Sequence record: NC_074634.1
Reading direction: 5' to 3' (one strand)
Length of the DNA: 26,097 nt
Shown here: in pieces, positions 461-25,786 of the stretch
Position numbering within the stretch: the stretch's first letter is position 1
How the letters are laid out: each line of letters begins with the position of its first letter
Notes under the pieces: model-generated
The model's database searches: none
What the model was told of the DNA's origin: nothing
The model's input: the letters and a program-made list of their open reading frames with translations, nothing else
Position numbers and translations under genes: made by a program

Positions 461-510
461 GTTATATCTTTTTTTATGGATAATTTTTCTCACTTTTCAG
501 ATAATAATTG
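458..510 (+). repeat. Cassette-boundary repeat R1 (oligo-T, terminator-like)
   Basis: TAAGTTATATCTTTTTTTATGGATAATTTTTCTCACTTTTCAGATAATAATTG begins at the RHH stop codon. It differs from 2228-2269 by one indel and one mismatch over about 41 nt. Confidence 0.85.
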
Positions 511-1251: not shown

Positions 1252-1276
1252 AAGATTTAAAAATGTTGTCATCAAG
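1252..1276 (+). promoter_or_regulatory. Conserved promoter (BRE/TATA followed by GTC)
   Basis: AAGATTTAAAAATGTTGTCATCAAG. The TATA lies about 23 nt before ATG 1284. The same 25-mer occurs on the - strand at 23620-23644. Confidence 0.8.
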
Positions 1277-2235: not shown

Positions 2236-2284
2236 TATCTTTTTTTATGCATAATTTTTCTCACTTTTGTAATAATATTTCTAC
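2228..2284 (+). repeat. Cassette-boundary repeat R2
   Basis: TAAGTTAATATCTTTTTTTATGCATAATTTTTCTCACTTTTGTAATAATATTTCTAC. Positions 2246-2283 match the reverse complement of 25658-25695 at 36/38 nt. Confidence 0.85.
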
Positions 2285-10926: not shown

Positions 10927-10960
10927 CTCAATATCCAACAGTCATATTCATAATATTAAT
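10927..10960 (+). repeat. 34-bp inverted repeat, left arm (overlaps palindrome copy B, 10946-10969)
   Basis: CTCAATATCCAACAGTCATATTCATAATATTAAT matches the reverse complement of 13190-13223 at 33/34 nt. Confidence 0.9.
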
Positions 10961-13189: not shown

Positions 13190-13223
13190 ATTAATATTAT
13201 GAATATGACTGTTGAATATTGAG
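13190..13223 (-). repeat. 34-bp inverted repeat, right arm (overlaps palindrome copy C, 13181-13204)
   Basis: Reverse complement reads CTCAATATTCAACAGTCATATTCATAATATTAAT. Confidence 0.9.
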
Positions 13224-17825: not shown

Positions 17826-17849
17826 ATTCATATAATCAATATTATGAAT
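17826..17849. promoter_or_regulatory. Palindrome ATTCATA-N10-TATGAAT (copy D)
   Basis: Perfect arms, 50 nt upstream of the methyltransferase ATG, with TATA-like CTTTTAAAA between them. Confidence 0.7.
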
Positions 17850-17898
17850 ATGCAAATTGATTGTTTGCTTTTAAAACGTCCACACTAGGAATTAAAAT

Positions 17899-21904: not shown

Positions 21905-21921
21905 TGACTACATTTTTAAAT
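21905..21921 (-). promoter_or_regulatory. Conserved TATA-GTC promoter for the permease operon, overlapping the tfb stop codon
   Basis: - strand reads ATTTAAAAATGTAGTCA, about 30 nt upstream of ATG 21886. Confidence 0.65.
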
Positions 21922-22720
21922 TTAAAATTTTTGCATTTTTCCTAAGCCCCGCCCCAGTGACCCCGCATTTTTCTTCAATCATTGGCTGGGTTATAAGGTA
22001 TCCACTTTGTTTAGCTAAATAATATAAAATTGTACATGCAACAGTTTTTGGATTTTTACCCTGGGCTTCAATTTCTTTTGCAATATTAAGCGCTTTTTCA
22101 ATTATCTCAATTGGCAATTCCAGCCTCACTCCACATTCTTTTATATAATCTTCAATTATAAATCGTGGTATTTTTTCATCAAATTCTTTTAATATCCTAA
22201 AATACATACTAACAAATTCCTTTTTTGGGATTCCGAATAATTCATCAACTTTTTTATAATATTCATCAAATGGCATTATAATTTTCAATTTCCTATAAGC
22301 TAAATAAATAGAAACCAAAACAATAATTTCATATCCTAGATATCTTAAATGTTTATTTTTCCATAGCTTTTGTAAAATTCTACCTGCCTCTTGTTTTATT
22401 GCATCATTAGCATTCAATTTTTCAACTGTAGATGATAAAAATCTTAAAGCATGCACTAAAATTCTCTTATTATTTGAATAAATTGCACATTTTTTCATCT
22501 TTTTTGGTTTAATTGCAGTCGTTGGTAGGAAACCTGAATTAACGAAATTGTTTGGGTTTATTGCTTTAGCTCTTGCCCTATCTTCAAACTGCTCAACATT
22601 ATAAGCCCTCCAATCAATACCTTCATCTACAACTCTATCTTCTAGAACTTCTCCAGTTTCAGTGCAAATATATTCGCCTCTCTCTGCATCAAATATGATC
22701 TTATCAGGAGGACAGCTCAT
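21908..22720 (-). CDS. tfb: Transcription initiation factor B homologue
   Basis: N-terminal CPPDKIIFDAERGEYICTETGEVLED..DWRAY closely matches the Sulfolobales TFB1 ribbon/B-reader as recalled; two degenerate cyclin repeats follow. Confidence 0.92.
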   Translation of the reverse strand: MSCPPDKIIFDAERGEYICTETGEVLEDRVVDEGIDWRAYNVEQFEDRARAKAINPNNFVNSGFLPTTAIKPKKMKKCAIYSNNKRILVHALRFLSSTVEKLNANDAIKQEAGRILQKLWKNKHLRYLGYEIIVLVSIYLAYRKLKIIMPFDEYYKKVDELFGIPKKEFVSMYFRILKEFDEKIPRFIIEDYIKECGVRLELPIEIIEKALNIAKEIEAQGKNPKTVACTILYYLAKQSGYLITQPMIEEKCGVTGAGLRKNAKILNLKM

Positions 22721-22782
22721 GAGAAGATCTCAAACCGCCTACATTTTTATTTCTTGCCAAGAACTACAATTTCAAACTTCAT

Positions 22783-22806
22783 ATTCATAATATTATAAAT
22801 ATGCAT
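22783..22806. promoter_or_regulatory. Palindrome copy E upstream of tfb
   Basis: ATTCATA-ATATTATAAA-TATGCAT, 63 nt upstream of the tfb start. Confidence 0.65.
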
Positions 22807-22828
22807 TGTTTGTTCAAATTAAGACAAT

Positions 22829-22883
22829 GTAGAAATAGTATATCAAATGTGAGAAAAATTAACCATAAAAAAAGAGAATTAAC
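22829..22883 (-). repeat. Cassette-boundary repeat R3
   Basis: - strand reads GTTAATTCTCTTTTTTTATGGTTAATTTTTCTCACATTTGATATACTATTTCTAC, starting at the stop codon of the 74-aa ORF. Confidence 0.8.
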
Positions 22884-23103
22884 CGACAATTTGACCCAAA
22901 ATTGGCTCAAGCCATGGTGGAAAGAATAAATGGCAACTGCCATCACTGCACGAATGGCAAGTATCAACATCAATAACGATAATTATTGGCAAAACTCCTG
23001 GATATTTTCTTGAAAATCTCTCAGCCTTTTCTTGGACATAACCGCTTTGAGATTTCAACCATTCTTTGTATTCTTTTTCATCTTTAAATTTTAGAACTTT
23101 CAT
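22879..23103 (-). CDS. Hypothetical protein (74 aa) with a CxxCxxxxCH cluster
   Basis: TCHSCSDGSCH may bind metal. RBS GGTGA upstream. Confidence 0.7.
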   Translation of the reverse strand: MKVLKFKDEKEYKEWLKSQSGYVQEKAERFSRKYPGVLPIIIVIDVDTCHSCSDGSCHLFFPPWLEPILGQIVG

Positions 23104-23112
23104 ACCTTAGCA

Positions 23113-23256
23113 TCACCCATATACGGCTTCTAGGTACCAAAGTAAAGCCTCACATTCATCTTCTGGCAAACTTGCCTCCTCCAAAGCGACAATAGTGTCT
23201 GGGCTATATCCCTCCAAGCCATATCCCTTTTGCTTTAAAAGCTCTAGGCAGTTCAT
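23113..23256 (-). CDS. Small acidic protein (47 aa), absent from the ORF track
   Basis: Reads MNCLELLKQKGYGLEGYSPDTIVALEEASLPEDECEALLWYLEAVYG*. GGTGAG lies 6 nt upstream, its own TGA forms the GGTGA RBS of the next gene, and it fills the gap almost exactly. Confidence 0.75.
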   Translation of the reverse strand: MNCLELLKQKGYGLEGYSPDTIVALEEASLPEDECEALLWYLEAVYG

Positions 23257-23263
23257 TGACAAC

Positions 23264-23599
23264 TCACCTTATTCTTAAGATGTAATAAAGATCATAACCA
23301 ATTTTATTCAACTCTTCTTCAGTTTGGATTACTTGTCCTTCCTCTAACCTTCTCTTCAATACAAATGCAATTGCGTTATCTCCAGGTTTGAAATAAATTG
23401 CAATCCTGCTTGTCTGAACTGGAATTCCCAATAAATTCGATAAAATGTTAGCAGTCGCACTGTGACCGATAGCACTTACAATATTTCCGGCATTATTTAC
23501 GATATCTCTTGCCTCCTTAAAATTTATCTTTTTTATTTGAAATTCTGCTTCCTGCCCTTCAAACGGGACAATTAGGCTATTTAGGAGATACAAGACCAT
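23264..23599 (-). CDS. acrIII-1: AcrIII-1 ring nuclease (DUF1874; cA4-degrading anti-CRISPR)
   Basis: LYLLNSLIVP, SAIGHSATA (catalytic His), SRI and KRRLEEGQV match the DUF1874 / SIRV1 gp29 / STIV B116 family. RBS GGTGAG before ATG 23599. Confidence 0.95.
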   Translation of the reverse strand: MVLYLLNSLIVPFEGQEAEFQIKKINFKEARDIVNNAGNIVSAIGHSATANILSNLLGIPVQTSRIAIYFKPGDNAIAFVLKRRLEEGQVIQTEEELNKIGYDLYYILRIR

Positions 23600-23619
23600 T
23601 CGACTCACCTTAAAATGAA

Positions 23620-23644
23620 CTTGATGACAACATTTTTAAATCTT
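23620..23644 (-). promoter_or_regulatory. acrIII-1 promoter, identical to 1252-1276
   Basis: 25/25 match AAGATTTAAAAATGTTGTCATCAAG. Confidence 0.85.
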
Positions 23645-23648
23645 TAAA

Positions 23649-24491
23649 TCATATAACTCTACAAAATTGCTTTTTCTTACATTCTTCAATTATATCTTCA
23701 AATTTAATATTATCTATTTCATTCGTAAATCCATAATCTTGTAAAATTACTTTATACATATTATCTCCAACAACAAATTCGGAAACTTTATAGAACCATG
23801 CCTTATGCCTGTCAGCATCTAGTTCTAATGCCAACCACCCAATATTTGCCTCCCTCCTACCGTACCAGTAAACTTCTTGCCTACCTCTTGGAATAAATAC
23901 TGCCTTCTCTTTAAGCTTATTGTATAAATCCAAATCTTGATATTCAAAAATGTAAAGACCATGACCTAGAATTCTCCAGTAAATTTCCCATAACGCAAAA
24001 TGATCAATTATATCTGGTAATGACAATATGTTGAAATTACCAATATTGACGACATAAGGATGTGCAATTCCAAATTTTTCAGCAGGAGTTAACTTAGTTG
24101 CTAAATCATTTGCAAAGACTTTATTTAATCTTGTAGTATCCACAGTGTAATAATTATAAAGTATAAGATTATTATTGGAAATTATACCATGAATTGCTAA
24201 TTTATCAAATTTCCATAAAATGTACTCTGTCGCAATCATATCTTGAATTGATGGGGCATCTGGACCTCTTGGGTGGGTATGCAAAATGGCGTGAACAGTT
24301 TCTGGCATGTACTTTTGCAAAGGACTGAGATCTGCACTGCCTTTGTCACCCTGATAATAATCGCTAAACCACTCGCCTAAAACAATTAAATATTCTCTAT
24401 CTGTGGTTTTTGACTTTTGATAAACATCTTTCAAAAAATCTAGGTTTTTAAAAATAGTAAGAACATTATTTCTAACTTTCGATCTGGACAT
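23649..24491 (-). CDS. JAB/MPN+ (JAMM) domain protein with an unknown C-terminal domain (280 aa)
   Basis: Upstream Glu (REY) followed by HTHPRGPDAPSIQD, an exact H-x-H-x7-S-x2-D motif (nt 24240-24281). Confidence 0.8.
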   Translation of the reverse strand: MSRSKVRNNVLTIFKNLDFLKDVYQKSKTTDREYLIVLGEWFSDYYQGDKGSADLSPLQKYMPETVHAILHTHPRGPDAPSIQDMIATEYILWKFDKLAIHGIISNNNLILYNYYTVDTTRLNKVFANDLATKLTPAEKFGIAHPYVVNIGNFNILSLPDIIDHFALWEIYWRILGHGLYIFEYQDLDLYNKLKEKAVFIPRGRQEVYWYGRREANIGWLALELDADRHKAWFYKVSEFVVGDNMYKVILQDYGFTNEIDNIKFEDIIEECKKKQFCRVI

Positions 24492-25610: not shown

Positions 25611-25631
25611 ATGACTACATTTTTATATCTT
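25611..25631 (-). promoter_or_regulatory. Conserved TATA-GTC promoter
   Basis: AAGATATAAAAATGTAGTCAT matches the acrIII-1 promoter at 19/21 nt. Confidence 0.75.
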
Positions 25632-25657: not shown

Positions 25658-25695
25658 TAGAAATATTATTATAAAAGTGAGAAAAATTAGGCATA
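25658..25695 (-). repeat. Cassette-boundary repeat R4
   Basis: - strand TATGCCTAATTTTTCTCACTTTTATAATAATATTTCTA matches R2 at 36/38 nt. Confidence 0.85.
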
Positions 25696-25786
25696 GAATT
25701 AGCTAAAGAATAAGGTTAAAAAATAAAAATAAAAATAGAAACGCAAAAAATTAGAAGGAATAGAAAATAAAAACAGGAAAAAATGA

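Follow-up and report, generated by a model that had tools for sequence, protein, structure and literature searches.

Among the closest described counterparts of the locus considered here is the AcrIII-1 operon of the rudiviruses SIRV1 and SIRV2. In those viruses the operon lies centrally in the genome, belongs to the middle/late class, contains core genes including that of the Holliday junction resolvase, and has no anti-defense promoter (PMC11065993; bioRxiv 10.1101/2023.01.10.523387). From this native operon the SIRV2 DUF1874 protein is not an anti-CRISPR (Acr) protein but acts via a host lysine methyltransferase, and the DUF1874 copy of ARV1 has been classed outside the anti-defense islands (bioRxiv 10.1101/2023.01.10.523387). 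Our window of 26,097 nt, 100% identical to the complete genome of Saccharolobus solfataricus rod-shaped virus 1 (SSRV1; MN876841.1 / NC_074634.1; Rudiviridae, Hoswirudivirus; Pozzuoli, Italy), likewise carries a rudivirus ring-nuclease gene, gp33, inside a short operon. However, the operon of SSRV1 and ARV2 lies in the variable right arm, where every SSRV1 gene is on the minus strand. It opens with a promoter element of the type that precedes anti-defense genes (ADGs) in ARV2, and small accessory genes follow the ring nuclease. In SSRV1 these small genes are gp32 and gp31, and tblastn found no homologs of either in SIRV records.

In bacteriophage acr operons, one strong early promoter drives several small acr genes, in many cases together with an aca regulator. 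The SSRV1 operon resembles them in that small, often acidic proteins are clustered behind a strong promoter and beside a known counter-defense gene. It differs in having neither a helix-turn-helix (HTH) nor a ribbon-helix-helix (RHH) Aca-like gene and in a cross-family conservation much above that of typical Acrs. The small genes were partly anticipated. The discoverers of SSRV1 regarded short hypothetical proteins common to Italian rudiviruses as "likely candidates for Acrs." The 47-aa family of gp32 is pADG.12, which is listed without function or type on a "low-probability" sheet (Bhoobalan-Chitty et al. 2024, Nat Commun 15:3699, PMC11065993). Its entries there, ARV2 gp36, SMV3 gp70, and SMV4 gp62, are 57–72% identical to gp32. 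That study did not analyze SSRV1 (0 mentions), and the synteny rule, the ORF59a paralog, and the predicted fold of this family were worked out here. The 74-aa family, of which gp31 is a full-length member, is the unannotated phrog_23125. It is absent from the 2024 ADG lists, its linkage to DUF1874 is reported here, and it has not been proposed before as an anti-defense candidate. Also new are the anatomy of the SSRV1 operon, the shared promoter and terminator repeats, the DUF1874/ADG.68 synteny rule for both families, the predicted fold of gp31, and the nonconservation of its CxxC motif. An earlier note on this DNA had called both small genes candidate new anti-CRISPR or anti-defense genes. 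As candidates they stand, given the ADG-type promoter and the linkage to DUF1874 and ADG.68, whereas "new" does not apply to the 47-aa family.

We propose that gp33, gp32, and gp31 form one tricistronic accessory operon whose two small products would be early-expressed host-interference effectors, probably directed against defense. They would act by stoichiometric binding of a conserved host or defense protein, not by catalysis or DNA binding. As a whole we hold this reading tentatively, at a little less than an even chance. Transcription would proceed from a strong TATA-type promoter that the virus uses twice, translation via GGTGA Shine-Dalgarno sites, two of which are built into preceding stop codons, and the unit would end at a T-rich repeat, E1. 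The layout, as read from the sequence, is promoter P, then gp33, gp32, and gp31, each behind its own Shine-Dalgarno site, and then terminator E1:

23620..23644, minus strand: promoter element P, AAGA + TATA-like TTTAAAAA + TGTTGTCATCAAG, in the 49-nt gp34-gp33 spacer
23605..23609, minus strand: GGTGA Shine-Dalgarno-like motif (AGGTGA), 5 nt before the gp33 ATG
23264..23599, minus strand: gp33, 111 aa, DUF1874 / STIV B116-like viral ring nuclease (AcrIII-1 family), annotated ORF33-111
23264..23268, minus strand: GGTGA arising from AGG, the final codon of gp33, and its TGA stop; the gp32 ATG follows after 7 nt
23113..23256, minus strand: gp32, 47 aa, hypothetical protein (GenBank SSRV1_gp32, ORF32-47)
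23113..23117, minus strand: GGTGA arising from GGG, the final codon of gp32, and its TGA stop; the gp31 ATG follows after 9 nt
22879..23103, minus strand: gp31, 74 aa, hypothetical protein (GenBank ORF31-74)
22849..22872, minus strand: repeat E1, T-rich terminator-like 24-mer (TTTTTTATGGnTAATTTTTCTCAC; TTTTTTATGGTTAATTTTTCTCAC), beginning 7 nt past the gp31 stop

The order and coordinates of acrIII-1, the 47-aa open reading frame (ORF), and the 74-aa ORF had been given correctly in the earlier note; all three genes lie on the minus strand. The 47-aa gene, described there as missing, was absent only from that reader's ORF track, as GenBank has it. The match of gp33 to Pfam PF08960 is strong (E 1.3e-30), and the genes are tightly spaced, with 7 nt between gp33 and gp32 and 9 nt between gp32 and gp31.

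GGTGA is reportedly the core of the Sulfolobales Shine-Dalgarno sequence, used mostly for internal cistrons. The earlier claim that such a ribosome-binding site is formed at the end of the preceding gene, for gp32 as well as for gp31, was confirmed (AGG-TGA and GGG-TGA). The pentamer as such is not enriched in SSRV1, with 22 copies on both strands against ∼25 expected from base composition. Yet 10 of these copies lie 2–9 nt upstream of annotated starts (gp06, gp09, gp16, gp17, gp26, gp31, gp32, gp33, gp35, and gp36), where ∼0.1 would be expected by our own arithmetic (37 genes × 8 positions / 52,194 strand positions). Thus, their placement is not a matter of chance. ARV2 provides a natural control: its version of the operon has no 74-aa gene, its 47-aa gene ends in GGA TAA without GGTGA, and a T-rich terminator-like repeat follows directly 3′ of that gene. 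The same holds more widely. At the upstream junction of the 47-aa gene, 19 homologous loci show either a GAGGTGA-like motif (most loci) or an overlap with the upstream stop codon, and overlapping ATGA junctions occur at some of them. At its downstream end, the gene finishes with GG(G/A)TGA only if another gene follows; otherwise, it ends in TAA and then a T-tract.

Upstream of the unit, the spacer between gp34 and gp33 contains AAGATTTAAAAATGTTGTCATCAAG, a TATA-like box with a conserved downstream block, which stops 20 nt short of the gp33 ATG. A second exact copy of element P lies at 1256-1276 (+), 22 nt before gp05, so that there are 2 matches against 0.01 expected. The spacer is almost identical in ARV2 although the adjoining coding sequence has diverged, and ARV2 carries the element three times, before gp37 (DUF1874), gp09 (ADG.48), and gp42 (ADG.49), the latter two with one mismatch each. 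Both gp09 and gp42 are predicted anti-defense genes in the study of Bhoobalan-Chitty et al. (2024; PMC11065993), which defines ADGs by a virus-specific early regulatory sequence upstream. The gp33-gp31 operon lies behind such a sequence, with the small genes as its internal cistrons. Element P presumably works as a promoter, and genes of its class are probably expressed early.

At the other end, E1 recurs in exact copies at 470-493 (+) after gp02, at 2241-2264 (+) after gp07, and at 22849-22872 (−), 3 copies against 0.01 expected. Its T-tracts suggest an archaeal terminator. The earlier note had the unit closing at a repeat that it called R3; this was borne out, for E1 stands directly after gp31 and is very probably that repeat. 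A diverged copy, retaining only the TAATTTTTCTCAC part, lies in the gp37-gp36 spacer at ∼25677-25700 (−). E1 might do more than terminate transcription, for instance by serving as a site where a protein binds. At the SMV-type loci (L012, L013, L015-L018, and L020), a conserved 3′ element, AAGCCAGCCCATTTTTTATG....AAACAGCTGTTT, is found just past the 47-aa stop, and its core, TTTTTTATG, is also the beginning of E1 in SSRV1 and ARV2.

The same pair of elements bounds the left-end operon gp05-gp06-gp07 (1256-2264 +; P at 1256-1276, E1 at 2241-2264). Since P and E1 frame the operons of both arms, these may be regarded as "twin" cassettes, probably co-regulated. The first gene of the left-end operon, gp05, is a homolog of ARV2 gp09 (ADG.48), a putative transcription regulator. 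A variant promoter core, TAAAAATGTAGTCA, precedes SSRV1 gp29 (21905-21918 −) and gp36 (25612-25625 −), and a near-copy of it precedes the TFB gene of ARV3 (L005 443-458).

The small genes are real and under purifying selection. Compared with SSRV1, their homologs differ by 0.21–0.41 nonsynonymous changes per site, against at least 0.59 for synonymous changes, which have reached saturation; dN/dS is 0.22–0.29 where computable. Their very short length could point to ORFs, one or both, that arose by chance or by annotation error and are not translated, as could one public contig (Logan SRR22299283; L028 456-596), in which the gene calls omit the 47-aa ORF between DUF1874 and the 74-aa gene. Against this stand homologs at 20 and 7 loci with the divergence pattern just given, conserved Shine-Dalgarno motifs, a PHROG family for each ORF, and the confident single-sequence fold prediction for gp32, so that we give an artefact almost no weight. 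Given the omission in that contig, the 47-aa family is probably undercounted in protein databases. As judged by sequence, both families are small and confined to viruses of Sulfolobales.

The product of gp32 matches phrog_11751 over 47 of 47 profile positions (E 2.7e-24; residues 3-49 of a 49-aa ORF). An alternative TTG start at 23262 was rejected, as all homologs start with M-N-C at the ATG. By tblastn, relatives were found in ARV2, ARV1, ATV, ATSV, SMV3, and SMV4, and contigs from IMG/VR, Logan, ENA, and JGI contain additional copies of the small-gene families. When 1.84 billion representative proteins were searched with a profile, only ∼17 clusters of the 47-aa family came up, each a stand-alone protein of 45–69 aa, with gp32 as the top-scoring member; that search gave no fusions and no evident cellular homologs. 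The protein had been described as acidic, and it is: gp32 has a net charge of −8 and a pI of ∼4, and 24 of the 25 family members examined are acidic. In an alignment of 14 sequences (A5), C3 and C35 are invariant, and exactly two cysteines are present in 22 of the 25 members. A loop, Y-N-L-x-G-Y-S-P-D-T, and a C-terminal Y-G are nearly invariant. The signature, which also includes E-C-E, is carried in full by gp32 (alignment A5 plus further representatives). An AlphaFold2 single-sequence model of gp32 is a three-helix bundle (mean pLDDT 91.8; helices 3-10, 19-27, and 32-46) with the two cysteines at the N-terminal end of helix 1 and helix 3, respectively. Since these helices run parallel in such a bundle, a C3-C35 disulfide is geometrically plausible. 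We therefore picture gp32 as a very acidic three-helix bundle that would probably be stapled by this disulfide and would present the conserved loop. Two members depart from the common form. ATV ORF59a (L014 3144-3323; phrog_11751 E 2.2e-24) is a tandem, more basic paralog between ORF48 and ORF79, and a divergent 45-aa member with four cysteines (L030 3-1000) stands alone, divergent to a DNA cytosine-5 methyltransferase gene.

The product of gp31 is nearly neutral in charge and matches phrog_23125 over its full length (residues 1-73, E 1.4e-29); by tblastn, relatives with 39–66% identity occur in ARV3 (gp33), ATV (ORF79), and ARV1 (ORF74a). It is probably a small α/β protein: the predicted domain is β-α-α-β-β-α with a pLDDT of 83, although only one of five models was confident. 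The earlier note had pointed to a CxxCxxxxCH motif, and the string is indeed present in SSRV1, as C49-H50-x-C52-x4-C57-H58 (CHxCxxxxCH). However, it is not conserved in the family. Across the seven members (alignment A10), no Cys or His column is invariant, the ARV1 member has one cysteine, and two metagenomic members have no loop cysteine, one of them also lacking the His. A conserved zinc site, which would need four metal ligands, was thus rejected, and the CHxCxxxxCH loop is lineage-specific. A zinc-binding role for gp31, for example as a small zinc-ribbon regulator, could draw on the SSRV1 motif and on a CxxC in four of the seven members. Given the lack of an invariant ligand column, the absence of a zinc-ribbon match in the Pfam scan, and the position of the motif within the least confident part of the model, we consider it very improbable.

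Neither fold led to a known protein. In searches of both models against the PDB by Foldseek, VIA-wide, and the ESM Atlas, nothing rose above noise (best VIA Z 4.0 and 3.5). The best matches of gp32, at Z ≤3.5, were to unrelated proteins (phi29 p16.7 and the DdrO C-terminal domain), and nothing should be read into an AcrIC5 row at Z 2.8. Profiles A5 and A6 had no match among PDB sequences, word-based homolog searches gave almost nothing, and a scan of a genome collection gave only a spurious 14-residue match. An Aca-type HTH or RHH regulator was rejected for both small proteins, as neither has a Pfam domain, gp32 carries a net charge of −8, and the fold searches gave no HTH. A UBA/CUE-like module, considered for gp32 because of its JAB neighbor, found no match in the Foldseek or VIA lists, a weak test at 47 residues.

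The comparison of gene neighborhoods covered 20 distinct loci of the 47-aa family and 7 of the 74-aa family. The earlier note had suggested looking for homologs near other acr genes, and they are there. At half of the 20 loci (SSRV1, ARV2, ATV, ARV1, SMV4, three contigs from IMG/VR, and two from Logan), the gene immediately upstream of the 47-aa gene is DUF1874, and at several of them stop and start codons overlap; DUF1874 also shares an operon with the 74-aa gene at 6 of the 7 loci. The full triad is present at four of the latter: SSRV1, ATV, ARV1, and the Logan contig in which the 47-aa ORF is uncalled. In two metagenomic contigs the 74-aa gene overlaps the stop of a longer DUF1874 gene, and the ARV3 copy is monocistronic, lying at the end of the genome. 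Elsewhere, the gene directly upstream of the 47-aa gene belongs to phrog_31280 (6 of 20; one gene further off in ATSV) or is an RHH gene (1 of 20), and two loci have no same-strand neighbor, one of them lying beside a C5-methyltransferase gene. An obligate DUF1874 subunit is excluded by this distribution, as co-occurrence fails at 10 of the 20 loci for the 47-aa family and at 1 of the 7 for the 74-aa family. Because each is also found without DUF1874, gp32 and gp31 would complement the ring nuclease rather than form an obligate part of it. DUF1874 and the small genes appear to be a cassette that is exchanged across Rudiviridae, Bicaudaviridae, and uncultured viruses of acidic hot springs.

The alternative upstream partner, phrog_31280, is a protein of ∼150 aa found in SMV3 (gp69; L016 2533-2991), ATSV (gp02; L008 979-1413), and four IMG/VR contigs. 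Its R-H, G-E, and C-terminal Q-H motifs are invariant, and a relative was detectable in neither Pfam nor the PDB. A divergent DUF1874 was rejected (hhalign probability 0.3%; no PDB relative), but it could be a functional analog of the ring nuclease. Its SMV3 member is ADG.68, and the DUF1874 protein of SMV4 (AcrIII-1) is also on the main ADG sheet (PMC11065993); what stands immediately upstream of the 47-aa gene is thus ADG.68 in SMV3 and AcrIII-1 in SMV4. The longer metagenomic DUF1874 genes (L025 1961-2383 and L026 400-819) have a C-terminal extension of ∼35 aa with a SECEGxC motif; directly behind each lies a Cys-free 74-aa homolog, and these contigs have no 47-aa gene. The Cys-rich extension was tested as a fused 47-aa domain, and this was dropped. 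Likewise dropped were the ideas that a 79-aa protein located behind the 47-aa gene in L031 is a relative of the 74-aa family and that a 118-aa protein in L033 is DUF1874 or phrog_31280.

On either side of the operon lie two genes that bear on its interpretation:

23649..24491, minus strand: gp34, divergent JAB/MPN-like "protease/deubiquitinase" (phrog_19077, E 3.9e-90)
21908-22720, minus strand: gp30, viral TFB, with a TFIIB zinc ribbon and cyclin repeat in domain scans

The Prok-JAB match of gp34 in Pfam is weak (E 0.0095). By tblastn, gp34 is an upstream neighbor kept in ARV2 and ATV, and the promoter-bearing spacer lies between it and gp33.

The anti-defense reading draws on several features of the locus. 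The promoter is of the ARV2 ADG type, and the upstream partners in SMV3 and SMV4 are genes behind ADG promoters. The small proteins are tiny, show nothing enzyme-like, are restricted to viruses, and are encoded in a variable arm, and gp32 is too acidic for a DNA-binding regulator. Several points weigh on the other side. The argument from association with acrIII-1 is weak, as the SIRV2 homolog is no Acr from its native locus, and it is weakened further by the judgment that the ARV1 DUF1874 copy lies outside the anti-defense islands. The authors of pADG.12 rated it low-probability (PMC11065993). Since element P also drives putative regulators (gp05/ADG.48), it marks a co-regulated class and not anti-defense itself. 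An identity of 50–70% across virus families seems unusually high for fast-evolving Acrs, and neither predicted model resembles any known Acr or other fold. High conservation would suit a conserved viral partner, and the small proteins could instead be accessories of DUF1874 (or ADG.68) that regulate, stabilize, or retarget it, with translational coupling setting the stoichiometry. The frequent position behind DUF1874, down to overlapping stop and start codons for the 47-aa gene and the overlap of the 74-aa gene with the DUF1874 stop in two metagenomic contigs, is what such accessories would show. However, the 47-aa gene also follows the unrelated ADG.68/phrog_31280 or an RHH gene, or stands alone by a C5-methyltransferase gene. 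The 74-aa gene is alone in ARV3, ARV2 has the 47-aa gene without it, and the profile search of 1.84 billion representatives gave no fusion proteins. DUF1874 itself is said, from its structures and enzymology, to be a self-sufficient homodimer. A complex prediction for the DUF1874 dimer with the 47-aa protein scored 0.31 against a mark of 0.32, with one control at 0.49, and is not used as evidence. We regard a partner role as unlikely, with perhaps one chance in five.

A role outside defense, as early host-takeover or regulatory factors acting, for example, on host transcription, the cell cycle, or ubiquitin-like (Urm1) modification together with gp34 and the TFB gp30, seems to us about equally unlikely. 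It would fit a promoter that also drives putative transcription regulators, a cassette placed between the JAB/MPN-like gene and the viral TFB in SSRV1 and ARV2, a SIRV2 DUF1874 protein that works through a host lysine methyltransferase and not as an Acr, and gp32 as a small module of three helices whose C-terminal YG is invariant. But the linkage to JAB and TFB is restricted to the Italian viruses, the SMV-type and metagenomic loci having neither gene, the charge of gp32 is far from that of a DNA-binding protein, and the fold searches gave no UBA/CUE or HTH match. More specific than the host-interference reading, and in our estimate rather improbable, is the idea that DUF1874 and the two small proteins make up a mobile, multi-pronged cassette against cyclic-oligoadenylate signaling. 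If so, the ring nuclease would destroy cA4, while the small proteins would bind and block conserved host parts of that pathway, such as CARF-domain effectors or the Cas10 complex, or tether the nuclease to them. This would explain both the joint movement of the genes between unrelated virus families and their unusual conservation.

Host interference by small binding proteins, the reading we favor, would be no surprise in kind. Its interest lies in two well-defined candidates and in a native context that could help to settle the debate over AcrIII-1. Few archaeal anti-CRISPR or anti-defense proteins have been characterized, and the role of AcrIII-1 as an Acr at its native loci is disputed. In SSRV1 and ARV2, unlike SIRV2, the ring-nuclease gene sits behind a promoter of the early/anti-defense type, and it has two conserved small passengers. 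The operon therefore offers a clean case for asking whether a natively early DUF1874 protein acts as an Acr and whether its companions are new inhibitors or cofactors. The 47-aa family, with three predicted helices and one possible disulfide, is of a size convenient for structural and biochemical work. More broadly, gp33-gp31 is a well-defined accessory operon, and its small genes are plausible and partly anticipated anti-defense candidates.

Beyond the operon, a search of both strands of 22600-23750 against Rfam gave no match, and a further motif marks the boundary with gp30:

22779..22806, no strand assigned: E2, palindrome-containing motif (CATATTCATAATATT...), in the gp30 (TFB) promoter region, outside the operon

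The E2 pattern, (T)CATATTCATAATATT..ATATGAAT, is intergenic before gp08, gp21, gp23, gp25, and gp30, with copies at 2302-2317, 10942-10958, 13192-13208, 17838-17850, and 22779-22806. It is probably the operator or promoter of a second, perhaps middle/late, class of genes.

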